Virus record (IMG/VR): IMGVR_UViG_3300043446_005562
Location: 188,619-252,618 of that record
Strand: one strand, 5' to 3'
Length of the DNA: 64,000 bases
The position numbers and the translations under genes are program-made. Positions 22,732-36,578 of this stretch are shown in pieces. The notes under the pieces were generated by a model. The model made no database searches. It worked only from the letters and a program-made list of their open reading frames with translations, and was not told the origin of the DNA. Numbering within the stretch: position 1 is the first letter of the stretch; every line of letters begins with the position of its first letter.

Positions 22732-22732
22732 A

Positions 22733-22809: not shown

Positions 22810-22811
22810 AG

Positions 22812-22881: not shown

Positions 22882-22885
22882 TAAT

Positions 22886-22920
22886 AAAAAATGGGGCTTA
22901 AACTTGCGCTTAAGCCCCAT
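22886..22920 (-). terminator. Intrinsic terminator immediately upstream of tRNA-Cys (attenuator terminator)
   Basis: ATGGGGCTTAAGC-gcaa-GTTTAAGCCCCAT then TTTTT. Confidence 0.85.
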
Positions 22921-22944
22921 GTAAGGTTTTAGTTTTCCATCACA

Positions 22945-23016
22945 TCACGACTTAAGTCCCTCAGATCTAGATCTGTGAGTACATAAACTTAATCGATGTA
23001 ATGATAAGGTTTTCAT
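22945..23016 (-). CDS. Putative leader peptide of the Cys/His/Leu/Arg tRNA operon
   Basis: MKTLSLHRLSLCTHRSRSEGLKS; ATG 6 nt after a -10 box; 4 TTA, 2 AGA, TGT, CAT and CAC codons. Confidence 0.7.
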   Translation of the reverse strand: MKTLSLHRLSLCTHRSRSEGLKS

Positions 23017-23022
23017 GTTAAT

Positions 23023-23050
23023 AATATACTATAAAATTGCTTTTCGGTTT
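23023..23050 (-). promoter_or_regulatory. Early-type promoter AAACC-N17-TATATT
   Basis: Matches the recurring window-wide motif AAAC(C/T)-N16-18-TATAAT. Confidence 0.6.
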
Positions 23051-24259
23051 TTATTTATTATCGGACCTGCCTAATTTACGTTTCACAGCTTCTCTGGTTT
23101 TTTCCATCTTTGCTGCGTAACTTGGATTCTTCTTTTTATTAAAATTAATCTGTTGATTTAGTGAACCTGATATTTTTTGTAGGTTCCTGCCTCTAGTTTT
23201 AATTAACCAATTAGCTAATGCATTTACTCCAAGTTCTTTAAATTTGCCGTTTGCGTCTGGTGCGTTAGAATCATGCCATTCAAGTCGCTTCTTTTCGGAT
23301 ACTGCATAATTATCTTCAATTGCTTGATCTACGATTTGTTCAATTTGAGCATCCGTAAATCCTAGATTTAACATAGGCTGTCTGAAAGACCATTTTAATT
23401 TATGAGTGAGTCTCTGTTTAATTTGTTCGGGAGTGGTTGCATAGTATCTAGTATCTCTGTGATTCACAAATACTTTACATACGGCTTTAACTCGACGAAC
23501 CATCTTCATTGGCTCTTTAATCAACTGTGCCATTCTTGAGGCTTTACCCTCATCGAATCCATAGCTGTTGAATAGACCATTCGCTCTCATCATGTCCTTT
23601 TCTTCAGGCTGAACTGCTTCAACGTCGATAAAATTGTTACTAGCTAAACCTAGTGCTTTTAATCTATTGTAATTACGTTGCTGATTTTCACGAATCTCTG
23701 ACATTCTTTGAAATTCTGAGAGTATTCGTTGACTGCGATCGTATTCTTCTCCTCCGTATTTTCCCGAATAGTAGGCAAGAACTGAAACTCCATTCATTAG
23801 ATCAGAATATGCAGATACTCTTGTTGTATCAGGATCCTTCTTCTGTAGAGAAATAATATCTAACAGAATATCTTCTAGGAAATCTAGCGCCGAGTTTGCA
23901 TTAATTTGAGCTGGCTCGCTTTCAAGATCATCGTCCTCAATAATATTAACGTAATTTGTAACTTGATCCGCCAATTGTTTTACTTCAGCCTCTGTGTTAG
24001 GCATCTCGGTGTTAACTGAAGATTTTTTAATCTTCTTTAGCGAAAATACTGGAACCTTTGCAATGGTTCCGTTGCTGCCTGTAAATTTGATTTTTGCGAA
24101 CTCTCCATCAATTGATAATAATTGACCGTGACCACGATAAGTATCAACCCAATCCCCAGGTTCTAATTCTGGATTGTCCTCGTTCTTTGCAAACTCTGAG
24201 TCAGGGTCTTGTAAAAATTTATCAAGATCGAAATCTTCGAATAGTTTAACGTGTTTCAT
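23051..24259 (-). CDS. Multi-module late protein with capsid-targeting-like N-terminus
   Basis: MKHVKLFEDF; internal NYNRLKALGL. Confidence 0.65.
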   Translation of the reverse strand: MKHVKLFEDFDLDKFLQDPDSEFAKNEDNPELEPGDWVDTYRGHGQLLSIDGEFAKIKFTGSNGTIAKVPVFSLKKIKKSSVNTEMPNTEAEVKQLADQVTNYVNIIEDDDLESEPAQINANSALDFLEDILLDIISLQKKDPDTTRVSAYSDLMNGVSVLAYYSGKYGGEEYDRSQRILSEFQRMSEIRENQQRNYNRLKALGLASNNFIDVEAVQPEEKDMMRANGLFNSYGFDEGKASRMAQLIKEPMKMVRRVKAVCKVFVNHRDTRYYATTPEQIKQRLTHKLKWSFRQPMLNLGFTDAQIEQIVDQAIEDNYAVSEKKRLEWHDSNAPDANGKFKELGVNALANWLIKTRGRNLQKISGSLNQQINFNKKKNPSYAAKMEKTREAVKRKLGRSDNK

Positions 24260-24653
24260 TGTACTTAATGATCAGTTCTCCTAAAACTTCAATTTTTCCA
24301 ACGATTCTTTGAAAGTCCATCTGCTTTAGCGCAATGGCTTTAGTTGAACCGTCAATTGATGTTAGATGCTCCGATAATTCTTTTTTGGCCTCAGCTAGAT
24401 TGAATTTTCCAGCTGCAGCTTTTTGATAGTATGGAAGTTTAACTTTAAAATGCTGATACGTCAAGAGGGCATCGCCGCCCTTTTCCTTGGCATTCTGAGC
24501 AATCTTTGAGGCTCCGCCCAAACGATTCTTTGCGAACTGTTCAAGAGTTTCAACCTGTTTGGCTTCATGCAGAGCATTGAAATCCATGAATGTTGTAGCA
24601 ATCTTGGTCTTCGGTAAGGTCTTTTGGTGTAATTCCCAGTTAATAATTGACAT
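24246..24653 (-). CDS. Hypothetical late protein
   Basis: TATAAATA at 24673-24680; TFMDFNALHE. Confidence 0.6.
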   Translation of the reverse strand: MSIINWELHQKTLPKTKIATTFMDFNALHEAKQVETLEQFAKNRLGGASKIAQNAKEKGGDALLTYQHFKVKLPYYQKAAAGKFNLAEAKKELSEHLTSIDGSTKAIALKQMDFQRIVGKIEVLGELIIKYNETR

Positions 24654-24671
24654 CAGCTTGACTAGTTTAGG

Positions 24672-26408
24672 TTATTTATACTCAACCTTGACTCTAGACC
24701 TGAACTCCGGTGGAAATTGGGTGCCGGCGTTCTTGAAAAGATCAGAAAAACAGCCGTCTATTAGATAGGTTACTGCCCAGTCTTCTGGGGTTCTGATTGA
24801 TCGTCCAACTCCCTGTAAAACCGAGACTGACGTCTTCCAGTTATACCATTTTTGAGAATAGTTTAGCTTGGCAGCAACGTACTTGTCACCAAGATGAGGA
24901 TACGGCACCTTTAAGAAGATTTGAAATCTGGACAGGTCGTCTACTAGATTTAGACCCTCAAGTAGAGATGGACCCATTGCAACGAGTCCACGAGTCTTCT
25001 TCATCTTCTTGAGCATCTTCTCCTTTTCATCAGAGCCTTTGTAGAGCAGCACTCTTTTTCTAAGCTCCTTAGGCAGATTCTTCCAAACCTTTTGACCAAG
25101 CTCATAGGAGCCGGTGTGAATGATGCCGGACTCGGTCGAATGAGTCTTTAGAATTTCCGAAACTCGATTGACTGCCCATTCTAAATTATCGGCCAGAAAT
25201 CTGGCTGACAATTTTTTACCCGGATAGAAAAAGATCGGCGACTTATCCCATTTAAAATGAGTCTCAATCTTGAAGTACTTTGCGGCCTTGATACCGTGAT
25301 TTCGCATAAAGTCTTGGGTGTTTCCCATCGTAGCGGTCATCAGCAGTTTAAAGCCGAATTTATTAAAGAAGTGCTTGTGTAGTAGGTAGTATTCGTCAAT
25401 GCAATTGAACGTGATTGAGGTTTCGCCCGGGTTCTTAACCATTTTTTCAAGACCGGTCTTCTCGATTATTTCGCAATAGTCTTCAAGCTTACAGTGAACG
25501 TCCTTTAACCAATCTGTTAAGTTAAAAGTTGCCAACCAATCCTGTGGAACATCGTTCTCTCCAAACTCCTTACCTGCAACCTCCCGAATGTCGGCAGTTG
25601 CCTTAACAAGTCCACCCAAGATTTTTGTTATCTCTTTTAGGTGAGCTAGGATAACGGCGGGTGCCTCCTCTAAATAGATCTCCTCAATGTTCTTTTTGAG
25701 TCCAATTAGATTAACACTGGGCACCTTAAGTCCCAAGTCACCAATGTTCTCAAGAGTCTTCTCAACCTTTTTGTAAATGTCATGGGAAACGATTGGGCTA
25801 AAATGACTCTGTACAATGTCTAGTAGCTTATGAGCCTCATCACAGACCACAAAGTCTCTTTGTGGAAATGGGGAGCCTTTGCCCTTGCCCTGCTGCTGTT
25901 GCTCAACGTAGTTTCTCTGAATTAGTGCGTACGGATAGGTGAGTAGCGCAACTGGCGATTTTATTGCCTTTTTTCTGGCAGTTAAGTATCCGCACTGTTT
26001 AAAACAAGGTAGCGATTCTGCAGCTTCGTATGATATGCCCTTGCTCTTACAGTCGCCGACCGAAAAACGTTCTCCGTTAACCGCGCATTCATAGTTATCA
26101 ACTCCCTTAATATTACCCCAATTCCAGAGCTGCATGCCTCGAAAGTCTTTGACGTACTGCTCATGTAGAGCCAGATCGGATGCAAGAATATAGCCGCGGT
26201 TGCCTTTGAAGGCCAGAAAATCAGCAAAAAGCATTGCAATGACGGATTTACCCGAACCAGTCGGTGCGTCTAACAGAAAGATTCCATTTGGATCTTCGTC
26301 GTATGCTTCAATTATTGAGAGAATTGCCTCTTTCTGCTGGGGTCTAAACTCAAACATTGGATGTTTACCCTTGACAAATTGTTCAAATTCAGCCTTTAAA
26401 TTACTCAT
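24672..26408 (-). CDS. DinG/XPD-like SF2 helicase
   Basis: FRPQQ, APTGSGKS, CDEAH, MTAT, KVPYP, QGVGRSIR; Cys residues consistent with an Fe-S domain. Confidence 0.85.
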   Translation of the reverse strand: MSNLKAEFEQFVKGKHPMFEFRPQQKEAILSIIEAYDEDPNGIFLLDAPTGSGKSVIAMLFADFLAFKGNRGYILASDLALHEQYVKDFRGMQLWNWGNIKGVDNYECAVNGERFSVGDCKSKGISYEAAESLPCFKQCGYLTARKKAIKSPVALLTYPYALIQRNYVEQQQQGKGKGSPFPQRDFVVCDEAHKLLDIVQSHFSPIVSHDIYKKVEKTLENIGDLGLKVPSVNLIGLKKNIEEIYLEEAPAVILAHLKEITKILGGLVKATADIREVAGKEFGENDVPQDWLATFNLTDWLKDVHCKLEDYCEIIEKTGLEKMVKNPGETSITFNCIDEYYLLHKHFFNKFGFKLLMTATMGNTQDFMRNHGIKAAKYFKIETHFKWDKSPIFFYPGKKLSARFLADNLEWAVNRVSEILKTHSTESGIIHTGSYELGQKVWKNLPKELRKRVLLYKGSDEKEKMLKKMKKTRGLVAMGPSLLEGLNLVDDLSRFQIFLKVPYPHLGDKYVAAKLNYSQKWYNWKTSVSVLQGVGRSIRTPEDWAVTYLIDGCFSDLFKNAGTQFPPEFRSRVKVEYK

Positions 26409-27121
26409 TATTTCCAGTAGTTTTGGTCCTTGTAAAAATAGGATTCGTTATTGCGATTAAGCCAATTTCTAAAAACCAGGCCTATCATTTTAAAGTACCC
26501 GTATCTTTTAAACCTTCGATTATCCTGCGTAATTAAATCCGGTACGAGCTTGAATTTTTTTGGCTTGATCTTTCGACTTAGCAGCCAATCTTCGCTTTGA
26601 TGAGCGGCTTCGTCAAATCCTCCAAGTTCTAAAAATATGAGTCGCCTAACGAGTATAAAACCGCCTATTGCAAACGGTTTCGTTTTGGAAAGGTACCATG
26701 TGACTAGTCGATTAATGCTAAATATTAATTTAGCTCGAATGTCAAACTCACCACGATATTTTGGACAAGTTCCAATCATTGCCAAATTTTCATTCATTAA
26801 GCAGGTTAGCGCTCGTGAGACGACCGTTTTATCAGTAAATGTAATATCCGCATCAATGAACAGCAGATATGGTGTGGTAGCGAGGTCCGCGCCGGCATTA
26901 CGGCCAACCGCCGGTAATCCTCCCTTAACTATCTCAACTCTTAGATCAAGTTGCTTCTTTAACTTTTCAATGATGCTGAGGGTTGAGTCAACTGAGCCAG
27001 CGTCCGCAATTATTATTCTCACGCCTTCCGTACCAAGCTGTCTTTTAATATGTCGAAGAGTTCTGCCAATATAGAGCTCTTCGTTGTAGCATGGAATGAC
27101 GATTGTGAGCAGATCCTGCAT
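26408..27121 (-). CDS. Glycosyltransferase family 2
   Basis: IVIPCYNEE, DAGSVD, GRNAGA, FIDAD, GGFDE, SED. Confidence 0.9.
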   Translation of the reverse strand: MQDLLTIVIPCYNEELYIGRTLRHIKRQLGTEGVRIIIADAGSVDSTLSIIEKLKKQLDLRVEIVKGGLPAVGRNAGADLATTPYLLFIDADITFTDKTVVSRALTCLMNENLAMIGTCPKYRGEFDIRAKLIFSINRLVTWYLSKTKPFAIGGFILVRRLIFLELGGFDEAAHQSEDWLLSRKIKPKKFKLVPDLITQDNRRFKRYGYFKMIGLVFRNWLNRNNESYFYKDQNYWK

Positions 27122-27816
27122 TAGATGAATAGGGTTAATTTTTGAGAATTTAGATTAAATCCAGAAGTTTCGTATATTACGTACGAAGTATTTTCAATCC
27201 AGTCACCGGTATTTAGATAGCGAACTCCATCGATCTGTTTGTCGGCCGGCGTATGAATGTGACCGCAGATAACCGTATGACAATTTCTCTTTTTTGCTTG
27301 CCTTACCATTTCATTTTCAAAGTCGGTCATGAAAGAGATAGCCGCTTTGACATTATCCTTTAGGTATTTGGATAGGCTTGTCTTTTTATTAAACTTCTTT
27401 AGTAGTCTATCGATTACTATTGCTAAATCGTAACCGATTGAGCCAAGCATGCCTAACCAGTGCATCTTTACAATACCATCATAGCGATCACCATGACAAA
27501 ACCAGATACCGGCCTCACAAAATTCGTCAACTACCTTTATTCCACCTATCGTAACTGGTAAATATTCTCTAAGAAATTCATCGTGATTGCCAGCGATCCA
27601 GATAACCTCATGCTCCTTTGAGACCTTTAATAACTTTCTAATGAGGCGAGTGTGTTCAACCGAAAATTTCTTGTACTTTTTAAACAACCAACCGTCAATT
27701 ATATCGCCGACCAGAATCAATCGGTCGAATTCGGTATTTTTTAGTAGTGCTATTACACCCTCGGTATTACAACCTTTAGAGCCAATGTGAACGTCCGATA
27801 TTACTAGAGTTTTCAT
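27121..27816 (-). CDS. LpxH-like (UDP-2,3-diacylglucosamine hydrolase family) metallophosphoesterase
   Basis: SDVHIG, GDIIDGW, GNHD, HGD, CGHIH, YLNTGDW. Confidence 0.8.
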   Translation of the reverse strand: MKTLVISDVHIGSKGCNTEGVIALLKNTEFDRLILVGDIIDGWLFKKYKKFSVEHTRLIRKLLKVSKEHEVIWIAGNHDEFLREYLPVTIGGIKVVDEFCEAGIWFCHGDRYDGIVKMHWLGMLGSIGYDLAIVIDRLLKKFNKKTSLSKYLKDNVKAAISFMTDFENEMVRQAKKRNCHTVICGHIHTPADKQIDGVRYLNTGDWIENTSYVIYETSGFNLNSQKLTLFI

Positions 27817-27818
27817 AA

Positions 27819-28130
27819 TTAATCCTTTTCCCAGCCTTCCTCGGCATGGTCATATTCACAGCAGGGAAACTGTCGACCCTTATCGTCAACGTGAGTCCAA
27901 ACCTTGCCTTCCTTAATCCATACCCAAGGTTCATCCGATTTTCCCGGAAGTTCAGGTCTTTCTAAAGGCGGATGATAGGCATTTACGTCAGTGTGTCTGT
28001 GATTACATTCACAACCTCTTGGAACGCAATCATCACAAGAATAGTCGTTCTCTTTGCTTGAATATCCGGGCAAGTAAACCCAGGTTGCGATCTTACCGCA
28101 ATCGCATAATTCTTTACCAGCTATCAACAT
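27819..28130 (-). CDS. Cys-rich hypothetical protein
   Basis: CDCG, CDDC, GCEC, PCCE. Confidence 0.55.
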   Translation of the reverse strand: MLIAGKELCDCGKIATWVYLPGYSSKENDYSCDDCVPRGCECNHRHTDVNAYHPPLERPELPGKSDEPWVWIKEGKVWTHVDDKGRQFPCCEYDHAEEGWEKD

Positions 28131-28317
28131 CAGTTAAATCTATTTCAGTTCCAGTTAAATGACTAAAGAGACGTAATTCACTACCAATTCCATTCGGTGT
28201 ACATTTCCAAGTAAGTAGCCCAACCTCACCATATATAGCCTTAATATGACTAATCCATTTATCAAACTTCTTCTGCTGCTTGTCATTTAATTCTATAATT
28301 ATTTGTTTATTTGCCAT
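28114..28317 (-). CDS. Hypothetical protein
   Basis: Packed ORF; TPNGIG...DLTDVDSW. Confidence 0.55.
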   Translation of the reverse strand: MANKQIIIELNDKQQKKFDKWISHIKAIYGEVGLLTWKCTPNGIGSELRLFSHLTGTEIDLTDVDSW

Positions 28318-28334
28318 TGCATGTATTTAAAAAG

Positions 28335-28441
28335 TAGTCGGTCCGGGACTCGAACCCGTATGCTGTTGCCAGCGGGGACTTGTACAATCCCTGTGTCTGT
28401 CCATCGGCAGTTGTACACCTGCTCGCTTTCACCACCCGACT
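28335..28441 (-). ncRNA. Aberrant tRNA-like RNA with enlarged D-arm hairpin
   Basis: Acceptor AGTCGG/CCGACT, T-arm CGGG-ttcgagt-CCCG, variable arm GCTG-gcaa-CAGC, anticodon-like GGGAT-tgtacaa-GTCCC, extra GCAG-gtgtacaa-CTGC. Confidence 0.7.
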
Positions 28442-28447
28442 GAAAAA

Positions 28448-28524
28448 TGGAAGAGGGGGGAATCCAACCCACCGTCACGGCCGTTAGGGCTTGCTCTCAT
28501 GTAGTGTCACTGAGCTACTCTTCC
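28448..28524 (-). ncRNA. Degenerate tRNA-like element
   Basis: Acceptor GGAAGAG/CTCTTCC, D-stem GCTC/GAGC with 15-nt loop, irregular anticodon arm, T-loop TTGGATT. Confidence 0.55.
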
Positions 28525-28528
28525 CTTG

Positions 28529-28606
28529 TACCCTCTGAGAGACTCGAACTCTCACCCGAAGACTAGATCCTAAGTCTAGCGCGTCTACCAATTCCGCCAA
28601 GAGGGC
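28529..28606 (-). tRNA. tRNA-Leu(TAG)
   Basis: CTAGA-cttagga-TCTAG; GGCGGAATTGGTAGACGC D-arm. Confidence 0.95.
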
Positions 28607-28617
28607 ATTCTATGAAA

Positions 28618-29043
28618 TTAATCGATTAGTGTTTCCATTTTAAAAGTTACAATCCACCTAGCGCAATCTTGAGGTAGTCGATTAATGTGTTTGTAATTAT
28701 TGATGTATCCCATCATGTTTGCAGACCCAATCGCATTTGCTGAATGTACCATCACTTTACAAACTGGGGCTCCATTCATCCATTGCTCTACTAACCACTT
28801 TGTACAATCCATTCCTGTTTTTTCAGTAATGTTGTCGTAGTTAAGAGTGTAGTTATGATACACGTTGGTGTGCCATTCTTTCATGGCTGAGTCACCTAAG
28901 TCGTGATCTAAGCTAATAAGAGCAATGTTCTCTAATCCAATTTCAGTTACCTTAGCTACAAACTCTTCGTAGTTACGTACTACTGTCCAATCTTCTTTAT
29001 TGATTGGAGTTCTTACGTCGTCTAGGTAAATATTGTATTTCAT
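28618..29043 (-). CDS. Cyclic-phosphate-processing receiver-domain protein
   Basis: IYLDDVRTP, ISLDHDLG, TGMDCTKWL and VHSAN motifs; adjacent to an RNA ligase. Confidence 0.75.
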   Translation of the reverse strand: MKYNIYLDDVRTPINKEDWTVVRNYEEFVAKVTEIGLENIALISLDHDLGDSAMKEWHTNVYHNYTLNYDNITEKTGMDCTKWLVEQWMNGAPVCKVMVHSANAIGSANMMGYINNYKHINRLPQDCARWIVTFKMETLID

Positions 29044-29079
29044 GTAGCTATTATACTAAGTTAAATCAGCTAGGGTTTA

Positions 29080-30159
29080 CTAGTCTCCGCCTTTTAGCAA
29101 AAATTTATTTGAGATTACCTTAAACGAAATTGATCTAACCATATTTCGGATTACCAAACCTTCACGCTCCGTACTTTCACACAGGGCAGATTTGCCCTCG
29201 GCGAACTGCAACAGCTCTTCAATTGTATTGGGCAGTAGAAAATGATTATGAAGCATGGGTACCGTTTCAAGGCCCAATTCATTGATCGTTTTTTCCAATT
29301 GGGCTTTAATGTAGTACTGATGTTCGTCGATATCGAAGATATTAAAGAACTTCAGAGTTTGACCCTTCAGCCTGTATGGATTGCCCTGAATTCCTTCACC
29401 GATAATCTCTCCTTGAAAGGAAACATTTTTACCAAGACTACGCATCTTTGTCTCAAGATCCAATTCTCTGGCAACCTTCCACATTGTGTTGTCTTCAGTC
29501 TCAAGCAGCTCAAGATTTCTAGAACAGATGCCAAATTCGCCATCCTTTACGTAGGCTGTGAAAGAGGATCCATCTAGCTTTTCAGTAACATAGAAGGAGG
29601 TTTTTGTGTAGCCCTCATACTCGTTGGTCAAGTTCTGCACTCGCTCTTCATCTGTTTTTGGAATGAACGATGGAAAAAGACCCTTGGCCACACCAGCTAA
29701 TGAAGCCGGTACCGGCGGTTCATACTTAATGATTCCCAAGTGTTTACTTACATCCAATCCTTCTTCAATCACCAGCGCATCATCGTAAGGCCCCAGTTGT
29801 AGCTGCTCTCCCCATGGCTGTTCACTGACTCCAACGACCATTTCCTCAGCACAGTTTAGAGTTTCAAGCGGTAGGACTAGACCTTGCGATACTTGGCCTC
29901 TGAGCTTAATCGTCTTTAATCGAAAGCCTTCAGAGCCGTCCGCTAATTTTCGATAGGAACTCTTACGTAAGAACTCAAACTCCTCCTTTATTGGCAGGAA
30001 CGAGTCAATTTCGCAATAGATGCACAGATCTCCCGGTTTGTACTCGCCCTTTTTGCAAACGACGTTCCAGTTATTGATCTGTACGACTTCAATCACGTCA
30101 GCTCCTTCGATCGGTCTAACGTCTCTGACTCTTTGAATACTTGCTAATTTTCTTTCCAT
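29080..30159 (-). CDS. RNA ligase, DRB0094 family
   Basis: MERKLASIQ OB-like N-terminus, FPSFIPKTDEERVQN, TEKLDGSS, QGEIIG, EREGLV, SFKVISNKFL. Confidence 0.9.
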   Translation of the reverse strand: MERKLASIQRVRDVRPIEGADVIEVVQINNWNVVCKKGEYKPGDLCIYCEIDSFLPIKEEFEFLRKSSYRKLADGSEGFRLKTIKLRGQVSQGLVLPLETLNCAEEMVVGVSEQPWGEQLQLGPYDDALVIEEGLDVSKHLGIIKYEPPVPASLAGVAKGLFPSFIPKTDEERVQNLTNEYEGYTKTSFYVTEKLDGSSFTAYVKDGEFGICSRNLELLETEDNTMWKVARELDLETKMRSLGKNVSFQGEIIGEGIQGNPYRLKGQTLKFFNIFDIDEHQYYIKAQLEKTINELGLETVPMLHNHFLLPNTIEELLQFAEGKSALCESTEREGLVIRNMVRSISFKVISNKFLLKGGD

Positions 30160-30161
30160 TT

Positions 30162-30419
30162 TTATTCTTTGTATATTTCGGCAAGTTTGCGTTCTATTTC
30201 ATAACACTTTTCGGATGGAACTCCATCTGCGTAAAATCTAAATGAATTGAACTTGCTCTTGATTTGACTGAACTTAAAATCCGGTAATTTGCTTAGGCTC
30301 TCAAACTCCGCGTCTAAATACTCAATTACTTCCGGTTTATCTAGTGCAAGCCCATAGTGGCCCTTTTTTAAAAAGGCACCCCACTTTTTGTTAAACTCAT
30401 CAGAGGTTGTAGGTTTCAT
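30162..30419 (-). CDS. Hypothetical protein
   Basis: QIKSKF..FRFY motif. Confidence 0.55.
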   Translation of the reverse strand: MKPTTSDEFNKKWGAFLKKGHYGLALDKPEVIEYLDAEFESLSKLPDFKFSQIKSKFNSFRFYADGVPSEKCYEIERKLAEIYKE

Positions 30420-30445
30420 ATATCGTTTTTAATAATTTAATTGTA

Positions 30446-30706
30446 CTAAAAAGGCAGTGGTCGGGTTTCCCAATCCGAGTAAGAGGTCCATTCGACAAGA
30501 TCGTCAACTTGACCCTCTTCGATCACATGAGCGACCATAATCTCCTGCTTCTCATTCTTTCCGACTGCGACCATTCTGCAGCCTTCACATAGAACAGGCA
30601 TGTAAGTATTTGGTTCAAGGGACTCAGCTATTTTCTGAACGTCTATTTCCGGTTCAAAATCTTCGCCCCACATTTCGGTTGCGCATCGATTACAAAAGTC
30701 TGCCAT
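30446..30706 (-). CDS. Small zinc-binding hypothetical protein
   Basis: FCNRC...LCEGC. Confidence 0.55.
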   Translation of the reverse strand: MADFCNRCATEMWGEDFEPEIDVQKIAESLEPNTYMPVLCEGCRMVAVGKNEKQEIMVAHVIEEGQVDDLVEWTSYSDWETRPLPF

Positions 30707-30707
30707 A

Positions 30708-31211
30708 TTATTGTCTGTTTAAAATTTTAAGAGCGTAGCCGTTGATCATAGGTCTGCCTGTGTTATAACAGCCCAGCACCAGACCCCAATCGCCGTACTT
30801 TTTATAGAGGTTTGAGAGCAGCTTCATTGAGATCTTTACATTTAATTCCAAGTCGTTTAATAGCTGCTTTGAAGTAATTTGTTTGCCCCAAGTTGCGGTT
30901 GCGGTCGGCACCTGAATCTGCATTGCACCGTAGGCATGAGCTGAAGACACAAGTTTTGGATTGTATCCCCAGTCGAATGGGCCGTGATAGCCGCTTTCAG
31001 TTTCAGCAACGCCCATCGCAATGTTGAAGGGTACGTTGTACTGCTTTGAGTAGGTCTGCAGATAATCGTACAGCCTAATACAAGGTGGCGCTTTTTTTAG
31101 TGAAACTTTGGAGAGATCTAGGGTTCTATCCCCGTGCTTAGCTGTTTCGTAAGACCAGGCTGCGCCAAATAATAACAGCACTCCAAAGATTAGAGTTGAT
31201 CTTAGTGACAT
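30708..31211 (-). CDS. Lytic transglycosylase (SLT domain) with signal/anchor
   Basis: AETESG, AYGAMQI, YNTG. Confidence 0.85.
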   Translation of the reverse strand: MSLRSTLIFGVLLLFGAAWSYETAKHGDRTLDLSKVSLKKAPPCIRLYDYLQTYSKQYNVPFNIAMGVAETESGYHGPFDWGYNPKLVSSAHAYGAMQIQVPTATATWGKQITSKQLLNDLELNVKISMKLLSNLYKKYGDWGLVLGCYNTGRPMINGYALKILNRQ

Positions 31212-31534
31212 TACTTCGCGATTTGGTCATACTTCCTAGAAGCATAAAGGTTAAAAATCATTAGTCCTACCGAATCTTGATACACGGTGTAGGTACCGTC
31301 CGCTCTATCGATTACAAGAAGTTCATTGCGCTCGTTGATCGCAACTGAGGTTGTGGATAGAGGTTTTGTATTCTTAAGTGGGGATTTCTTTGCGTGACTC
31401 ATCATTACCCAATAGTAATAGCCAATAAAGAATCCAGTTATCATTGCGACCGCAACAATAAGCAGATTACCAAGTTTCTTTGCAAAGACGTTTAAACGAG
31501 CCAATGCATTCGTGATCATGAGTTTCTTGTCCAT
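31211..31534 (-). CDS. Membrane protein
   Basis: Single TM helix; coupled to the SLT gene. Confidence 0.55.
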   Translation of the reverse strand: MDKKLMITNALARLNVFAKKLGNLLIVAVAMITGFFIGYYYWVMMSHAKKSPLKNTKPLSTTSVAINERNELLVIDRADGTYTVYQDSVGLMIFNLYASRKYDQIAK

Positions 31535-31590
31535 AACTTTGTTTTATAGGTTTAAAACTATTATACTAAAAAATGGGGCGAGCGGTCTTT

Positions 31591-31971
31591 TTAGTATTCT
31601 TTTGGACTTTCGATGTCCTTTAAGTCTGGAAATTTAGTGTACAGTTTATGATAGATTCTGTCAAATCTGCGATCCTGATCCCGTTGAAATCGATCGCCCG
31701 CTTCAAATACATTGCGCTGAATGTTTGATTGTTCTTCTCGAATGGATCTAAATTCCCATTCAAGATTCTTTCGAATCTCTTCAGTGTTCTCTTCCAATCT
31801 TCGATAAAGATCTTCCCGAACTGAATGAAGTGTGTTAGCAAGACCTGTTAGATCATTACTTAATTGATTGTTGATTGCTTGTGCCTTACGTAACCCCAAC
31901 CCAATCCATCCAAGATAGATTACGGCCAAAGTGCCTAGTACGCTCAACACGACAGTTGAAATTATTGTCAT
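31591..31971 (-). CDS. N-terminal TM plus coiled-coil protein
   Basis: Hydrophobic N-terminus, heptad-rich body; bracketed by a 10-bp inverted repeat. Confidence 0.6.
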   Translation of the reverse strand: MTIISTVVLSVLGTLAVIYLGWIGLGLRKAQAINNQLSNDLTGLANTLHSVREDLYRRLEENTEEIRKNLEWEFRSIREEQSNIQRNVFEAGDRFQRDQDRRFDRIYHKLYTKFPDLKDIESPKEY

Positions 31972-32033
31972 ATATTTAGGGTGTTTTTAGTGCTCGCCCC
32001 AAATATTTTACTCTATCGTAAACTTAGGTTTTG

Positions 32034-32888
32034 TTAAAAGCCGTTGGTTGAAGTGTTATAAAAAACTTTACCAGTCACGTCGGTCGTCTTGGTGATGGTC
32101 GGCGTTGAATAGTTAAAGGTTAATACATCACCGCCTGTGTTCTCTCCGAATTGAATTCTAATTGGATAATAAGTGCCGGACGTTAAAGCAACTGAGCCGG
32201 ATCTTTCAACCGTTCCATGGAGTCCTCCATTATTCACAGTTGCATTGCCTGTGGTAAAGCCGCTAATTGCATTACTTCCAACCCAAACATAGGAAGCATC
32301 ATCGCTTGATGTGTAAAAGGTATAGGTTTCAGTCGTAGTTGGTTTAAAATAACCCAACCATTGACAACTAAATACTTCTCCATCATTTGAGGATGGTTCG
32401 GAAATCACTGTAGTTTGAACTGATGTTGCCGGGTTAGCACCGAATGTCGTTGGCGTAGCGGTCGCAAAAAAGCTTACGTTATCACTAAAATATCCAGAAT
32501 AGGTTGTTTTGTAGAGACCCGCTGCATACGGTACAAATGTTGTAAAATAATTATTGGTATTCAACCAATCATACGCCAATTGAGCTGTTGCAAAGGGTCC
32601 ACTTGCGCCAGCAACAGCATTTGCAATACTTAAAAAACTTGCATCTGTCAAGCTACTCGATCTCCAAAAACCAACGGTTCCGTTGTTCAGGCCGTTTGGT
32701 GTGGGCTGATTTGCTGCAGCAACGTCCTTTGCGATAATATAGCCCAGTGATTCGTCTGGACCCATCCACCAGGTAAGACCGGTCGCGCCAAAGCCGGCGC
32801 TTGGGGTACCGTATGCCAGGTTTCCAAGCTGGGTTGTTCCGCCGATTGCGGCGCCAGTATTACGAGTGAAGGGTCGTGATGTTGCCAT
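32034..32888 (-). CDS. PA14-domain (carbohydrate-binding) putative virion protein
   Basis: FSCQWLGYFKP...YTFYTSSDDAS...NNGGLHG...YYPIRIQFGE; late-promoter-like AATAAATA at 32911-32918. Confidence 0.8.
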   Translation of the reverse strand: MATSRPFTRNTGAAIGGTTQLGNLAYGTPSAGFGATGLTWWMGPDESLGYIIAKDVAAANQPTPNGLNNGTVGFWRSSSLTDASFLSIANAVAGASGPFATAQLAYDWLNTNNYFTTFVPYAAGLYKTTYSGYFSDNVSFFATATPTTFGANPATSVQTTVISEPSSNDGEVFSCQWLGYFKPTTTETYTFYTSSDDASYVWVGSNAISGFTTGNATVNNGGLHGTVERSGSVALTSGTYYPIRIQFGENTGGDVLTFNYSTPTITKTTDVTGKVFYNTSTNGF

Positions 32889-32913
32889 CCAGTAACTAGA
32901 TCTTTCTAGTTAT

Positions 32914-34005
32914 TTATTCTTCTTGATTCCAGAAAGGTTTTTGATAATCTGGTCGAATCTGCTTCCAGATCTGCTGACTGGGATCCCGACCGTTCAGCAA
33001 GCAGAATAGGGTGCTCCAAGCGGTTTGCGGAACATTTTCTTGAATCCACAAGGCCTCGTCCTTTCTGGTCTTGAAACCCTGTTCAGATAATTGATTTAGA
33101 TAATTTTGCGCAGACCTCATTCGCATGACATGTGCAACTTTTAGGGCAGCCTCCCACTGTCTAACCCATGCATCAAATTCATCGGGCACCATCTCTAAAA
33201 ATTGATCAAGTTCTTCGCCCCGGCTCAGGTGCTCCCAAATATCGACATTAGAAAAATTGGTCAAGAGCCGGTGCAATCGAACGTATTCTTCGAATTTAAT
33301 CTTCATTCTAAAATTTCCGGGCTGGAATCTTAGAACAAAACCTTCAGCCTTTCTAGTATTCATGGCCTTTAGGCTTTCATAGAGTTCAGGACTAAAATTA
33401 AAATGTTGCTCAGTTTTTACCAGATCAGATTTGCTAATTCCGTTTGACCTAAAAAAAGCGCACGCGGTTGTCCAGTGCAATTCAGTACCCTCAGAGATGG
33501 CGCTCAGAAAAACCACCCTGGGCTTGGAACCGTAATCAACAACTATACGATTCTTGGGATAGATGATTTCGCACAAGTAGGTTACTCGACGCTCAAATTG
33601 ACGTAGTCCAAAATATTTCTCTTTTAGAATTTTTAAACCCTCAACTGCCTGATCCGAATGAAATGAACCTCGAGTGGCCATGTGCCAGGCGTCAGCATAA
33701 TAGAATAGAATTCCCAATGAGCCGTCCATTTTTTGCTGCACATAAACGTAATCACCTTTGACTGGAATTTGACCAGTCTGCGCAGCCTCCTCGTAATTAA
33801 AGAATTTATTGAAACCCCTAGCCACAATCTCGCCTGAATCATCCATGATGAGACCTCGACACTGTAGAGTCACTTCATCCCATGCCGAATCGTATTGGCA
33901 TTTTCTAGAGTAATTGTAAATTGTCAACGGTAATTTGTTATGCCGATTGGCAACGACCAATCCACGGTTGACGTAATCCTTTAAGATAGTTTGAGTTAGG
34001 GTCAT
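32914..34005 (-). CDS. RNA ligase 1 (T4 RnlA-like)
   Basis: CRGLI, FNKFFNY, KMDGSLG, ATRGSF, NRIVVDY, EGFV, KIKFEEY. Confidence 0.9.
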   Translation of the reverse strand: MTLTQTILKDYVNRGLVVANRHNKLPLTIYNYSRKCQYDSAWDEVTLQCRGLIMDDSGEIVARGFNKFFNYEEAAQTGQIPVKGDYVYVQQKMDGSLGILFYYADAWHMATRGSFHSDQAVEGLKILKEKYFGLRQFERRVTYLCEIIYPKNRIVVDYGSKPRVVFLSAISEGTELHWTTACAFFRSNGISKSDLVKTEQHFNFSPELYESLKAMNTRKAEGFVLRFQPGNFRMKIKFEEYVRLHRLLTNFSNVDIWEHLSRGEELDQFLEMVPDEFDAWVRQWEAALKVAHVMRMRSAQNYLNQLSEQGFKTRKDEALWIQENVPQTAWSTLFCLLNGRDPSQQIWKQIRPDYQKPFWNQEE

Positions 34006-34410
34006 TTATAATTTAATTTCAAAACGAGCTCTCATCTGCTCTACTTTTTCAGCCGGCACTCCATGAGAATTAATGCCACCGTGCCTATTTTCAACAATGA
34101 TTGAGAAAACTCGATAGTTCCATTCCTTTGCTAAATCGTAATAGGCTTGCATTTCCCACTCTTGAGTAAATGTATTCGAGACCACAATCACGGAATTTTG
34201 ACCGGTTGTGTGATTTAGTATCATGGCGGTTTCCACATCACCATAACACCACTGATGAGCCTCCTTTAATTTAGAGGCATCGAATCGATATTCGCTATTC
34301 TCATCCAAGAAAAATCTGTCTGTTTCAAAATGAGAACCTCCAAGCTCTTTAGCTAGTGTTGATTTGCCCGCACCCGGCAAACCTCGTAAAAGAAATAGTG
34401 TCTTTGTCAT
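34006..34410 (-). CDS. P-loop kinase (polynucleotide-kinase-like, AAA_33)
   Basis: LRGLPGAGKST, VSNTF, HGVP...MRARFE; abuts Rnl1. Confidence 0.8.
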   Translation of the reverse strand: MTKTLFLLRGLPGAGKSTLAKELGGSHFETDRFFLDENSEYRFDASKLKEAHQWCYGDVETAMILNHTTGQNSVIVVSNTFTQEWEMQAYYDLAKEWNYRVFSIIVENRHGGINSHGVPAEKVEQMRARFEIKL

Positions 34411-34441
34411 GCTATTTTAGTTAATGATATTATACTAAAAG

Positions 34442-34523
34442 TGGGAGTAGGTGGACTCGAACCACCGAACTCAGAAGAGGAGGGATTTACAGTCCCTTGC
34501 AATTGCCGCTATGCGATACTCCC
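34442..34523 (-). tRNA. tRNA-Tyr(GTA)
   Basis: AGGGA-ctgtaaa-TCCCT; long variable arm. Confidence 0.95.
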
Positions 34524-34663
34524 AAAATAAGGAAAGGGGAAGATGGTTGTGTGGACGACCCCTTTTACGATTGGCTTTACTCTGCTAATGATCTGCCAAC
34601 TCCGATGCTGCCAGTCGACCATTAGTCTCAAACTATTGACAGCTCATTCCCCAATCAACCTTG

Positions 34664-34738
34664 TCGGGGTGGCAGGATTCGAACCTACGACCTCCTGCTC
34701 CCAAAGCAGGCGCGATAACCGGACTACGCTACACCCCG
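34664..34738 (-). tRNA. tRNA-Pro(TGG)
   Basis: CCTGC-tttggga-GCAGG. Confidence 0.95.
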
Positions 34739-34820
34739 AAAATCAATACGCTTTCGCCCCCTGTATGGCGTATTACTGATGCTTAAGGTCGGCCTTAACC
34801 GTTAAGGGAGCCACCAGTTG

Positions 34821-34893
34821 AGCGGATGGCGAGAATCGAACTCGCATCTCCAGCTTGGAAGGCTGGAGTAATAAGCCATTATACGACATCCGC
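34821..34893 (-). tRNA. tRNA-Gly(TCC)
   Basis: CCAGC-cttccaa-GCTGG. Confidence 0.95.
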
Positions 34894-34900
34894 TTATTTG

Positions 34901-34973
34901 AGCGGGAGACCGGGTTCGAACCGGCGACCTCAACCTTGGCAAGGTTGCGCTCTACCAACTGAGCTACTCCCGC
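34901..34973 (-). tRNA. tRNA-Gly(GCC)
   Basis: CAACC-ttgccaa-GGTTG. Confidence 0.95.
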
Positions 34974-35160
34974 AATTGGGTAGGATCAGACGTGTTCTGC
35001 CTACTAGGCAGGTCTGCCTACCGAGACCTCGTCGTTAACTTTCGTCAGAGCGTACCGAGACACCATTTGTTTTTCGACTTGAGGTAGTCACGGCCGCCTC
35101 TGGTCCTCTCAAGTCTATTTCGTATCGTGGCAAGATGCGGCTCGACCCTGATACGCTGTG

Positions 35161-35233
35161 AGCCTCCTGCCGGGATCGAACCAGCGACCTACTGATTACA
35201 AATCAGTTGCTCTACCAGCTGAGCTAAGGAGGC
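35161..35233 (-). tRNA. tRNA-Thr(TGT)
   Basis: ACTGA-tttgtaa-TCAGT. Confidence 0.95.
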
Positions 35234-35316
35234 AAGATGAACCGTCACAGTGGTTCAGTCTGGTCATTTTCTTCTTCAGTCATCGGTAAACCGCGACCTT
35301 CTGACGGTGACATCCA

Positions 35317-35393
35317 TGGTGGACCGTGAGAGACTCGAACTCTCGACCCCCTGCGTGCAAGGCAGGTGCTCTAGCCAACTGAGCTAACAGCCC
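35317..35393 (-). tRNA. tRNA-Ala(TGC)
   Basis: CCTGC-cttgcac-GCAGG; G3:U70; CCA. Confidence 0.95.
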
Positions 35394-35399
35394 ATTTTG

Positions 35400-35471
35400 T
35401 AGCCCGTACGAGAATCGAACTCGTCTCTCATCCGTGAAAGGGATGCGTCCTAACCGATAGACTAACGGGCC
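35400..35471 (-). tRNA. tRNA-Glu(TTC)
   Basis: CATCC-ctttcac-GGATG. Confidence 0.95.
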
Positions 35472-35593
35472 AAATAAAAACATAATACTACTTTAATAGC
35501 GCTTACCCAATTTTACAACAGAGCGCGTTACCTTGCTAGACCGTTATTGGGCAACGACTTCTAACAATCCTACCTACCCATATTATGTTTTTG

Positions 35594-35665
35594 CGGTCCC
35601 ACCGGGAATCGAACCCGGCACTTTGCCGTGACAGGGCAATATTATAGCCGATTAACTATGAGACC
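35594..35665 (-). tRNA. tRNA-Asp(GTC)
   Basis: TTGCC-ctgtcac-GGCAA. Confidence 0.95.
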
Positions 35666-35864
35666 TTTTGCTCCTTATAAATCCTTCCCGTGCACAGAAC
35701 AAGAAACTGGGGAGACGTTGTTTCTACTTTTATGAAAGGCTTGGGTACCCTCTCCCACCGTTTCGCAGGTTGAAGCGTCCATCTCCACGCCGTCCCTGTG
35801 GAACTACAGTGGCTGGTTGTTGCGGCATGCTGCGCTGTGATGGAACATTCGCACAAGCATTGAC

Positions 35865-35939
35865 TGGTTGCGGGTGCTGGAATCGAACCAGCGATCTTTG
35901 GGTTATGAGCCCAACGAGTTACCATTTCTCCGACCCGCG
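35865..35939 (-). tRNA. Initiator tRNA-fMet(CAT)
   Basis: C1:A72 mismatch, three G:C pairs in the anticodon stem, CCA. Confidence 0.9.
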
Positions 35940-35944
35940 ATGTG

Positions 35945-36015
35945 TTGTCCCGCAAGGATTCGAACCTCAATTCTCTGGACCAAAACCAGATGTGCTGCCG
36001 TTACACCACAGGACA
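35945..36015 (-). tRNA. tRNA-Gln(TTG)
   Basis: TCTGG-ttttggt-CCAGA. Confidence 0.95.
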
Positions 36016-36027
36016 ATTTACTATCTC

Positions 36028-36043
36028 CAATACGTCAAAGAAC
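36028..36043 (-). promoter_or_regulatory. boxA-like antitermination element
   Basis: GTTCTTTGACGTATTG downstream of an internal TATAAT (about 36065-36070). Confidence 0.55.
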
Positions 36044-36086
36044 CTAATTCTCTTTGTATAGAATATTATACTATATTCCAGAGATC

Positions 36087-36160
36087 TGGCACGAGTGGAG
36101 AGATTCGAACTCCCATCAACGGTTTTGGAGACCGGTATGCTACCATTGCACCACACACGT
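36087..36160 (-). tRNA. tRNA-Trp(CCA)
   Basis: CGGT-ctccaaa-ACCG; CCA end. Confidence 0.9.
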
Positions 36161-36164
36161 ATTT

Positions 36165-36241
36165 TGGTTGGAATAGTAGGATTTGAACCTACGACCTCAT
36201 GAGTATCAGTCATGCGCTCTAACCAACTGAGCTATATTCCA
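36165..36241 (-). tRNA. tRNA-Ile(GAT)
   Basis: CATGA-ctgatac-TCATG; CCA end. Confidence 0.9.
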
Positions 36242-36244
36242 ATT

Positions 36245-36320
36245 TGGTGGTGCGGGGCAGGATCGAACTGCCGACACCAGGATTTTCAGTCCTGTGCTCT
36301 ACCGTCTGAGCTACCGCACC
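36245..36320 (-). tRNA. tRNA-Phe(GAA)
   Basis: CAGGA-ctgaaaa-TCCTG; CCA end. Confidence 0.95.
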
Positions 36321-36324
36321 GGGT

Positions 36325-36360
36325 AAAACAAAAAACCTCGAATTTTTTAGGTTCGAGGTT
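36325..36360 (-). terminator. Intrinsic terminator immediately upstream of tRNA-Phe (attenuator terminator)
   Basis: AACCTCGAA-cctaaaaaa-TTCGAGGTT then TTTTGTTTT. Confidence 0.8.
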
Positions 36361-36384
36361 CAGTGTTTCGTAGTTAATATTTCC

Positions 36385-36516
36385 TTAACTTAATCCGCTT
36401 GAACCTCGCAATGCCCCAAAATCTTTAATCGCTTCCGTTGCATTCACAGTAATTGTGCCTGCCGGATACTGATTCCAGTTTTGAGAAATTTTTGATGTGT
36501 TCGCGTAGTTTTGCAC
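36385..36516 (-). CDS. Putative leader peptide of the 13-tRNA operon
   Basis: GTG start after an A-rich leader; MQNYANTSKISQNWNQYPAGTITVNATEAIKDFGALRGSSGLS; contains the antiterminator strand CGAGGTTCA. Confidence 0.7.
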   Translation of the reverse strand: MQNYANTSKISQNWNQYPAGTITVNATEAIKDFGALRGSSGLS

Positions 36517-36537: not shown

Positions 36538-36578
36538 TATTTATAAAGCTATTATACCAACTTTTCGGAAAAAGGTTC
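36538..36578 (-). promoter_or_regulatory. Tandem early-type (GAACC-N17-TATAAT) and late (TATAAATA) promoters of the tRNA operon
   Basis: TATAAT at 36551-36556 with GAACC at 36574-36578; TATAAATA at 36538-36545. Confidence 0.65.

Follow-up and report, generated by a model that had tools for sequence, protein, structure and literature searches.

Two tRNA gene arrays and their leaders

The window analysed here is a 64,000-nt stretch of a giant phage genome (IMG/VR record IMGVR_UViG_3300043446_005562, positions 188,619 to 252,618), and all of its tRNA genes lie on the minus strand. Most fall into two arrays. Array 1 (22550-22881) encodes Cys(gca), His(gtg), Leu(taa) and Arg(tct), while array 2 (34441-36320) encodes Phe, Ile, Trp, Gln, Met, Asp, Glu, Ala, Thr, Gly, Gly, Pro and Tyr. 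The two sets do not overlap. Relatives add Leu(tag), Arg(acg), Ser(tga) and Ser(gct) to the first array, and Lys, Asn, Val, Val, Ile and Met to the second. Two further genes stand alone: tRNA-Leu(tag) (28528-28606, minus strand) directly follows a gene and has no leader, and tRNA-Ser(tga) (40082-40169, minus strand) sits behind its own promoter-like site (TTGACT ... GTAGTATAAT) with no leader or terminator. Ser is outside both arrays in this phage. Both arrays are preceded by a promoter-like site, a short ORF, an RNA strand that can pair with the 5' arm of a terminator, and an intrinsic terminator 3-10 nt before the first tRNA. There is no room for a promoter between terminator and tRNA.

Leader 1 has a promoter-like region (23021-23050, minus strand) comprising AAACCGAAAAG and a -10-like GTATATT that ends 6 nt before the ATG, so that the leader mRNA would be nearly leaderless. 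This region is invariant or nearly so in 5 relatives (designated here by L numbers), including L002, where a different gene lies upstream, although its function as a promoter is inferred. The ORF itself (22945-23016, minus strand) has 23 codons and reads MKTLSLHRLSLCTHRSRSEGLKS. It contains 5 L, 3 R, 2 H and 1 C, or 11 of the 22 codons after Met, and 14 of the 15 residues at codons 4-18 are L/S/H/R/C. It is followed by an intrinsic terminator (22882-22920, minus strand) with a 13-bp stem (22920-22891), a GCAA loop and a T-run at 22890-22886, only 4 nt from tRNA-Cys.

Leader 2, whose start lies 13.5 kb from that of leader 1, has a promoter-like region (36551-36577, minus strand) with AACCTTTTTCCGAAAAG and then the extended -10 TGGTATAAT, conserved in all leader 2 variants although the upstream genes differ. 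The ORF (36385-36516, minus strand) starts with GTG and has 43 codons, with no L, R, H or C in codons 1-35; L36 and R37 lie in the antiterminator strand and L42 lies after it. The terminator (36325-36362, minus strand) consists of the 5' arm AACCTCGAA (36360-36352), a 9-nt loop, the 3' arm TTCGAGGTT (36342-36334) and a T-run (36333-36325), with tRNA-Phe starting 4 nt later. It was read from the sequence, appears in the MFE fold and is invariant in 13 distinct sequences; a consensus terminator scan with a loop limit of 8 missed it. The two leaders show no ORF similarity and share only a promoter-region word, CCGAAAAG.

The initial annotation had stated that leader 1 is rich in L/H/R/C and has no Q, N, Y, A, I, W, P, V, D or F, and that leader 2 has no L, R, H or C in its first 35 codons. 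Both statements are confirmed. It did not mention that S is frequent in both leaders, or that 10 of the 32 sensing codons of leader 2 (N, K, S, V) have no tRNA in the array 2 of the window. Could such a composition be coincidental? The window contains 1,639 ORFs of at least 10 codons, and the cut-off at codon 35 was chosen after seeing the sequence. However, L/H/R/C make up only 15.8% of residues in the long ORFs of the phage, and only 10 of 499 ORFs of 18-30 codons reach 50%. Only 1 of 37,706 fifteen-residue windows, this one, has at least 14 of 15 residues in L/S/H/R/C, and only 2 of 414 ORFs of at least 36 codons, one of them leader 2 itself, lack L/R/H/C in codons 2-35. The ORFs are also conserved in every relative with a split array, and independent leader families behave alike. 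These observations contradict coincidence, which is very improbable.

Conservation of the ORFs and of the RNA switch

Leader 1 was found in 5 distinct variants, always of 23 codons and with the same start and stop, and leader 2 in 9 variants of 42-43 codons that include a frame-preserving 3-nt indel. The GTG start of leader 2 aligns with ATG in more distant homologues. The lack of a Shine-Dalgarno sequence is normal for this phage, as only 6 of 67 long ORFs have one and upstream regions are A-rich. Selection acts on composition rather than sequence. Two clades of leader 1 differ at 20 of 45 bases in the core (44%), a near-saturating divergence, and 8 residues are replaced, all within L/S/H/R/C, so that 14-15 of 15 codons stay in that set (P≈3e-5 in a substitution simulation). 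In leader 2 there are at least 26 nonsynonymous versus at least 9 synonymous state changes, with only one change to L/R/H/C where about 20% are expected (P≈0.025). L/R/H/C are absent from codons 1-35 in 8 of the 9 variants; the split-clade variant L137 has a Leu codon at position 4.

Both leaders are far more structured than shuffled sequences (z = -5.70 and -4.55; 0 of 200 shuffles fold as well), and terminator and antiterminator alternatives exist in every variant. In leader 1, the antiterminator 5' strand CTTAAGTC (22949-22956, minus strand; codons 21-23, ending 1 nt before the stop codon) pairs with 22909-22916 in the 5' arm of the terminator. This pairing holds in 100% of cells in 5 sequences, against at most 55% in slid controls, and 2 pairs have changes on both sides. 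A long-range helix, P1, is formed in the MFE fold between 22995-23003 (minus strand; codons 5-8) and 22938-22946 just after the stop codon, and would hold the antiterminator strand inside a closed domain when no ribosome is present; 97.8% of its cells are paired, with one compensatory pair in 3 sequences. The terminator is 96.8% paired with 2 compensatory pairs. A palindrome inside the ORF, CAGATCT/AGATCTG (22962-22975, minus strand), is a possible pause hairpin. It is present in all variants with a different sequence (CAAGACT/AGTCTTG in L010), but its register shifts between clades, so that column counts are poor.

In leader 2, the antiterminator 5' strand CGAGGTTCA (36400-36408, minus strand; codons 37-39, 12 nt before the stop codon) pairs with 36354-36362, bases that also belong to the terminator. 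The pairing holds in 86.5% of cells in 14 sequences. Covariation is not significant because the region hardly varies, but the core GAGGTTC is kept in three different reading frames. A ribosome-footprint folding model places the switch between codons 33 and 34: the antiterminator has 9-10 pairs with the A site at codons 1-33, and the terminator has 9 pairs at codons 34-44, which is where L36 and R37 begin. For leader 1, however, the 13-bp terminator wins thermodynamically at every modelled ribosome position, so antitermination would have to be kinetic.

These data bear on two alternatives. In the first, the hairpins are ordinary terminators or 5' processing and stability elements of the tRNA precursors, for example a structured 5' leader removed by RNase P or RNase E, and the small ORFs are untranslated. 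The strong structure, the long stretches of leader 2 that are invariant even at synonymous sites, the lack of translation evidence, and two lineages (L114, L134) that have deleted the ORF and antiterminator but kept the promoter and terminator all point this way. However, the reading frame, start and stop are kept across clades, the stop codon always lies 1-12 nt after the antiterminator strand in four leader families, and replacements stay inside an amino-acid set defined by the genetic code, which an untranslated RNA cannot sense. This makes a purely RNA-level element unlikely. In the second, the ORFs encode functional micropeptides that lie next to tRNA arrays incidentally, as blocks such as QNWNQYPAGT and IKDFG, conserved in the split clade, might suggest. 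Yet these blocks are also conserved at synonymous sites, which points to RNA-level constraint, nonsynonymous changes outnumber synonymous ones, the residue order of leader 1 is permuted between clades, the C-terminal residues change with reading frame while the RNA motif stays, and the peptide has no relative among 5.8 billion proteins. A micropeptide function is therefore highly doubtful.

Leader composition and array content

Related phages with one undivided array (Val, Lys, Gly, Thr, Met, Tyr, Phe, Arg, Leu, Arg, Pro, Leu, Leu, Cys, Trp, Asn, Gln, Ala, Ile, Ser, Ser, His) carry homologous leaders (L158, L168, L171, L172, L173) with 4-7 L/R/H/C codons, which the split clade has purged. They mostly lack D/E, whose tRNAs lie outside that array. 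In L158 the amino-acid set of the sensing part equals the array set apart from Met, and both lack D and E. A further leader family in other jumbo phages also tracks its array: all 21 of 21 sensing codons are served in L117, whose array starts Ala, Phe, Lys, Val, Trp, and 17 of 18 in L122, whose array starts Asn, Gly, Gln, Pro, Ile, Trp. Compared with the expectation from amino-acid usage, the served fraction is 0.62-0.87 versus 0.16-0.22 for leader 1 (P 3e-5 to 2.5e-7), 0.94 versus 0.78 for leader 2 of the relative L089 (P 0.018), 1.00 versus 0.87 for L158 (P 0.022) and 0.94 versus 0.69 for L122 (P 0.012). The sensing-window rule behind these values was derived from a model of one leader and then applied to the others.

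The matching is imperfect. In the window itself leader 2 matches its array only weakly, with 22 of 32 codons served versus 0.59 expected (P 0.17). Leaders track the ancestral, pan-clade array rather than the present tRNA set of each phage: the relative L091 lacks Asp, Ala and Gly tRNAs but keeps those codons. A third leader family, located before Asp-Met in L158, L171 and L173, has mixed composition, with 2 of 21 codons served. Most amino acids are represented by only 1-5 scattered codons rather than tandem runs, and high diversity in a peptide of about 37 residues is not unusual in itself (mean 15.6 distinct residues; P(at least 17) = 0.27).

These exceptions leave room for a model in which the modules couple tRNA transcription to general translation activity or to a trans-acting factor, with the composition match a by-product of ancestry or of RNA-structure constraints on the ORF. 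In-frame palindromes such as AGATCT repeats, for instance, automatically give Arg/Ser codon pairs. Structure constraints do not, however, explain the Leu, His and Cys codons that lie outside the hairpin. The five-member amino-acid set of leader 1 equals the five amino acids of array 1 in the relatives L010 and L012, one of 15,504 possible five-member sets, and survives the divergence between clades. Together with the presence of L/R/H/C in the undivided-array homologues and their absence in the split clade, and with L117 and L122 differing in the direction that their arrays predict, this makes the codon-independent model possible but unlikely.

A two-channel attenuation model

Together, these results support a model, with a probability of roughly 0.65, in which each array is controlled by a ribosome-mediated transcription attenuator, although the mechanism is inferred from anatomy and comparative data with no direct evidence of translation, termination or regulation. 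Transcription would start at the promoter-like site and a ribosome would begin translating the leader ORF. If every codon is decoded quickly, the ribosome reaches the stop codon and covers the antiterminator 5' strand 1-12 nt upstream, the terminator forms, and RNA polymerase stops a few bases before the first tRNA. If the ribosome stalls earlier because a charged tRNA is scarce, the free antiterminator strand pairs with the 5' arm of the terminator and polymerase reads into the array. With no ribosome at all, a long-range helix sequesters the antiterminator strand and termination occurs. An exact 172-nt metatranscriptome contig (36292-36463) that bridges tRNA-Phe, the terminator and the leader ORF is compatible with read-through transcripts, but the metatranscriptome contigs show no excess of short leader transcripts, and DNA carry-over cannot be excluded.

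Multivalent attenuators of amino-acid operons, such as the E. coli ilvGMEDA/ilvBN leaders (Leu, Val, Ile) and the thr leader (Thr and Ile), likewise appear to combine a short leader ORF whose codons for several amino acids act as stall sites, alternative antiterminator and terminator hairpins, a stop codon placed so that a terminating ribosome masks the antiterminator strand, and an anti-antiterminator helix. They differ in that they are not phage systems, regulate biosynthetic enzymes and sense two or three amino acids through tandem runs, whereas here tRNAs would be regulated, five to about fifteen amino acids would be sensed through scattered single codons, and the alphabet is partitioned between two leaders in one genome. 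Rfam leader models do not match (Thr_leader scores 20 bits against a gathering score of 55). The pheST (pheM leader) attenuator also controls a component of the translation apparatus in response to charged cognate tRNA, but it is cellular, regulates a protein-coding synthetase and senses a single amino acid through a run of Phe codons. T-box riboswitches choose between a terminator and an antiterminator upstream of translation-related genes, but bind uncharged tRNA directly, without a ribosome, through a specifier codon and a conserved T-box sequence; no T-box model matched here, and the present elements carry conserved ORFs. Phage tRNA clusters (T4, T5, jumbo and huge phages) share with these arrays the many tRNA genes, the homing-endonuclease ORFs interspersed in relatives and the nearby tRNA repair genes (Pnk, Rnl1). 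They are regarded as expressed from ordinary early or middle promoters, and no report of leader-peptide attenuation or codon-matched leaders was found in the literature library searched.

The initial annotation had inferred a two-channel tRNA-supply monitor in which the same logic arose or was tuned twice. The inference is supported, but the logic was used more than twice in this phage group, as four leader families were seen. The sensing part of leader 1 is written in Leu/Ser/His/Arg/Cys codons and that of leader 2 in the other fifteen amino acids, so that in this model each array is switched on by a shortage of the tRNA species it encodes. Candidate triggers are a codon-usage mismatch with the host, loss of host tRNAs during infection, or host anticodon nucleases. 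The phage thus probably makes tRNAs on demand when ribosomes run short of them, through a two-channel negative feedback on tRNA supply.

Anatomy and conservation of the two leaders

The record IMGVR_UViG_3300043446_005562 is a 252.6-kb uncultured jumbo phage with no close relative among GenBank phages: megablast and blastn searches found no relative of either leader, and only tRNA matches came up. Its helicase is nearest to a huge uncultured phage and to the Lak phages of Prevotella. Shine-Dalgarno sequences are lacking (6 of 67 genes have one) and upstream regions are A-rich. Together with the helicase affinity, these features point to a Bacteroidota host, although this is an inference. All 19 tRNA genes of the window lie on the minus strand. 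Array 1 (22550-22881) encodes Cys, His, Leu(taa) and Arg(tct), and array 2 (34441-36320) encodes Phe, Ile, Trp, Gln, Met, Asp, Glu, Ala, Thr, Gly, Gly, Pro and Tyr. Leu(tag) at 28528 and Ser(tga) at 40082 stand alone, without leaders. A degenerate tRNA-like sequence lies right after tRNA-Leu(tag), at 28448-28524 (-), but it scores 25.8 bits against the Rfam tRNA model, below the threshold of 29, and is not called by ARAGORN. Directly downstream of array 2, at 32914-34410 (-), a P-loop polynucleotide-kinase-like ATPase (34006-34410) and an Rnl1-type RNA ligase (32914-34005) look like a T4-like tRNA repair pair and may be co-transcribed with the array.

Each array is directly preceded by a short ORF and an intrinsic terminator. 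Upstream of array 1, a 23-codon ORF (23016-22945) is followed by a 13-bp stem and T-run (22920-22886) that ends 4 nt before tRNA-Cys. Upstream of array 2, a 43-codon GTG-initiated ORF (36516-36385) is followed by a 9-bp stem with a 9-nt loop and a T-run (36360-36325) that ends 4 nt before tRNA-Phe. No third module was found in the window. The initial annotation described leader 1 as rich in L/H/R/C and devoid of Q, N, Y, A, I, W, P, V, D and F, and leader 2 as free of L, R, H and C in its first 35 codons, and both statements are exactly right. Both compositions are unusual against nulls drawn from the window itself: 1 of 37,706 fifteen-residue windows reaches 14/15 L/S/H/R/C, and 2 of 414 ORFs lack L/R/H/C in codons 2-35. 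High amino acid diversity, in contrast, is not evidence on its own, as random 36-mers have 15.6 distinct residues on average.

Five distinct versions of leader 1 were found in related contigs of 253-271 kb, all with 23 codons and the same start and stop. The promoter-like block is invariant or nearly so even where a different gene lies upstream, and the 285-aa gene upstream in the window is not syntenic with tRNA arrays elsewhere. The word TATATTATTA(A/G)C immediately before an ATG (window 23017-23031, minus strand) recurs in front of ordinary genes of unrelated viral contigs (L100, L105, L109 and L111), suggesting a -10-like box that gives nearly leaderless mRNAs. A scan of genome contigs with a pattern for the start of leader 1 gave only chance MKTxSLH matches. 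Between the two clades of leader 1, 20 of the 45 bases of codons 4-18 differ and eight residues are replaced (HRLSLCTHRSRS against HSLCLRSSRLSL), yet 14-15 of the 15 codons remain L, S, H, R or C, a result that a substitution simulation keeping the frame open gives in about 3 of 100,000 trials. In two of the related loci, L010 and L012, the array is Cys, Ser, His, Leu, Leu, Ser, Arg, Arg, which is exactly the five amino acids of the leader core.

Leader 2 was traced independently of its own motifs, by searching with the invariant terminator, which retrieved nine distinct versions of 42-43 codons from viral and metagenome contigs. Eight of the nine have no L/R/H/C in codons 1-35, the exception being L137, with one Leu codon at position 4. 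Within this clade there are at least 26 nonsynonymous and at least 9 synonymous state changes, and only one change leads to L/R/H/C, where about 20% would be expected (P≈0.025). These counts do not show the purifying selection on the amino acid sequence that would be expected of a functional small protein gene, and a search of 5.8 billion proteins with the leader 2 peptide found only the peptide itself. Two lineages (L114 around 7801-7827, minus strand, and L134 around 1889-1915, plus strand) are natural deletion variants in which the promoter is joined directly to the terminator, the leader ORF and antiterminator are gone, and tRNA-Phe is truncated. This lineage also lacks array 1 downstream of the 402-aa gene homologue (locus L011) and has a reduced array.

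Leader composition and array content in related phages

The pan-clade array 2 is Phe, Lys, Ile, Met, Trp, Gln, Met, Asp, Glu, Ala, Thr, Gly, Gly, Val, Val, Pro, Ile, Asn, Tyr, Met, and together with array 1 it covers all twenty amino acids. The window phage has lost the Lys, Asn and Val tRNAs but keeps those codons in the leader, and its own leader 2 matches its present array only weakly (P 0.17). Relatives also carry suppressor-type tRNAs inside or near the arrays, with anticodon tta (reading UAA) and an anticodon tca species that ARAGORN labels SeC (L085 2229-2306 on the minus strand, L031 194-271 and L035 3045-3116; L032 1775-1847 and L034 605-677).

The key comparison comes from more distant leaders (L133 and L138), also retrieved by the invariant terminator, and from the full loci then obtained (L158, L168 and L171-L173). 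These leaders, 35-38 codons long in five distant homologues, are homologous to leader 2: starts and stops align, an ATG stands where the window has GTG, and the blocks NY..IS and WN.I.P align. They precede one undivided array: Val, Lys, Gly, Thr, Met, Tyr, Phe, Arg, Leu, Arg, Pro, Leu, Leu, Cys, Trp, Asn, Gln, Ala, Ile, Ser, Ser, His. They contain 4-7 L/R/H/C codons in their first 30 codons, and they mostly lack D and E, whose tRNAs lie outside that array. In L158 the amino acids of the sensing part are exactly those of the array apart from Met, with D and E missing from both. In the split clade, Asp and Glu tRNAs are inside array 2, and E28 and D32 are conserved in leader 2. The leader alphabet therefore changed together with the array content. 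Homologues of the kinase-like gene at 55-75% identity (L167, L169, L170, L176 and L177) are not next to tRNA arrays. In the undivided arrays, HNH and DUF559-type endonuclease ORFs are inserted between tRNA genes (L158 12122-12616, L168 7119-7703, L171 7963-8460 and L173 7958-9178). A Ro60/TROVE-like protein gene also sits between tRNA clusters (L158 8591-10216 and 10220-10416; also L168, L171 and L173), followed by repeated units beginning GTTCTTTGAAA/GTTCTTTAAAA that may be Y-RNA-like or tRNA-like RNAs. The same word precedes odd tRNA-like calls in L032, L034, L035, L085 and L071.

A generic scan of all the loci obtained, looking for a hairpin plus T-run just upstream of a first tRNA with an ORF ending nearby, recovered all of these leaders and another family in other jumbo phages. 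In L117, L123, L125 and L130 the array starts Ala, Phe, Lys, Val, Trp, and the antiterminator strand TCTCGAGGT is the exact complement of the terminator's 5' arm. In L122 the array starts Asn, Gly, Gln, Pro, Ile, Trp, and the leader contains a run, QPNQIWIGN, made only of those six amino acids. The array serves 21/21 sensing codons in L117 and 17/18 in L122, although the rule defining the sensing window was fixed after modelling one leader. However, a leader before Asp-Met in L158, L171 and L173 has the same RNA design but a mixed composition, with only 2/21 codons served; its operon continues into protein genes. In the other jumbo-phage group the motif TATCTTTG, apparently of the TAnnTTTG type of Bacteroidota -7 promoter boxes, lies upstream of the leaders or arrays (L117 about 4440-4470, L123, L130 and L071), whereas the window's leaders use TATAAT-like boxes. 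Does the correspondence extend to individual codons? Codon-level matching, such as TTA with Leu(taa) and AGA with Arg(tct), is compatible with the data but not distinguishable from the phage's own codon usage, in which TTA+TTG make up 35% of Leu codons and AGA+AGG 46% of Arg codons.

Alternative RNA pairings and transcript evidence

Both window leaders fold far better than shuffles (z = -5.70 and -4.55). In leader 1, the strand CTTAAGTC (22956-22949) pairs with GGCTTAAG in the terminator's 5' arm over 8 pairs: all 40 cells are paired across five sequences, two pairs show changes on both sides, and slid controls reach at most 55%. The terminator and a long-range helix (23003-22995 with 22946-22938) also covary. 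In leader 2, CGAGGTTCA (36408-36400) pairs with TGAACCTCG (36362-36354) over 9 pairs, with 86.5% of cells paired in 14 sequences, but covariation is not significant because the region barely varies. More telling, the core GAGGTTC is kept in three different reading frames in different clades, and it is therefore an RNA signal, not a peptide signal. The stop codon is placed so that a terminating ribosome would mask this strand: it lies 1 nt after it in leader 1, 12 nt in leader 2 and 3-8 nt in the undivided-array leaders of L158, L171 and L173, overlaps it in the Asp-Met leader, and in every family lies 0-12 nt after it.

A simple model in which a ribosome footprint was masked at each codon gives, for leader 2, the antiterminator with the A site at codons 1-33 and the terminator at codons 34-44, which is exactly where L36 and R37 begin. 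For leader 1 the thermodynamic model does not switch, as the terminator always wins, so the choice would have to be kinetic. The expression data bearing on these pairings are limited to one exact 172-nt metatranscriptome contig that bridges tRNA-Phe, the terminator and the leader; the metatranscriptome contigs are mostly cellular tRNA look-alikes and give no 3'-end information. Exact metatranscriptome contigs also cover the spacer between tRNA-Asp and tRNA-Met (35649-35846, minus strand) at depth 9-36, while the upstream protein gene has depth 0-2.7. A promoter-like site (36092-36065) lies inside the array, so internal promoters may contribute to expression.

Relation to known attenuators and possible role

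The design has every structural feature that defines leader-peptide attenuators. It differs from them in the kind of gene regulated, tRNA genes in place of amino acid biosynthesis, synthetase or resistance genes, and in its multivalent, partitioned alphabet. A T-box riboswitch is not supported, as no T-box hit was obtained at E up to 1 on either leader. Nor does any described Rfam family reach its gathering threshold: the best hits, Thr_leader at 20.1 bits against 55 and BjrC68 at 27.7 against 39, cover only the terminator region. Full-text searches, in a collection lacking much of the subscription literature, found no description of attenuation of tRNA arrays by leader peptides. The proposal of the initial annotation, that the two leaders form a two-channel tRNA-supply monitor, is supported, but the mechanism itself is inferred, with a probability of about 0.65.

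A broader view, only slightly more likely than not, is that a group of freshwater jumbo phages, probably of Bacteroidota, runs its tRNA genes as demand-driven feedback circuits, in which leader peptides act as ribosome-stall sensors and their codon content is an index of the tRNAs encoded downstream. When an ancestral array split in two, the sensor alphabet would have split with it, L/S/H/R/C against the other fifteen amino acids. The phage would then measure shortages in the host's tRNA pool, caused by codon mismatch, host shut-off or anticodon nucleases, and answer only with the needed set, next to a Pnk/Rnl1 tRNA repair module.

Such a system would extend leader-peptide attenuation, a textbook mechanism known for amino acid and synthetase operons, to RNA genes and to viruses, and would add an extreme multivalent form in which the amino acid alphabet is partitioned between two sensors. 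Leader composition could predict the tRNA content and evolutionary history of arrays, and the modules could serve as compact reporters of the availability of specific tRNAs. Why phages carry tRNA genes is a long-standing question, for which the proposals include compensating for codon usage, replacing tRNAs lost on host shut-off and evading anticodon nucleases. A built-in sensor that turns an array on when ribosomes stall at the matching codons would show that the phage treats tRNA supply as a regulated quantity, and would make the question testable, since the leader tells which shortages the phage expects.
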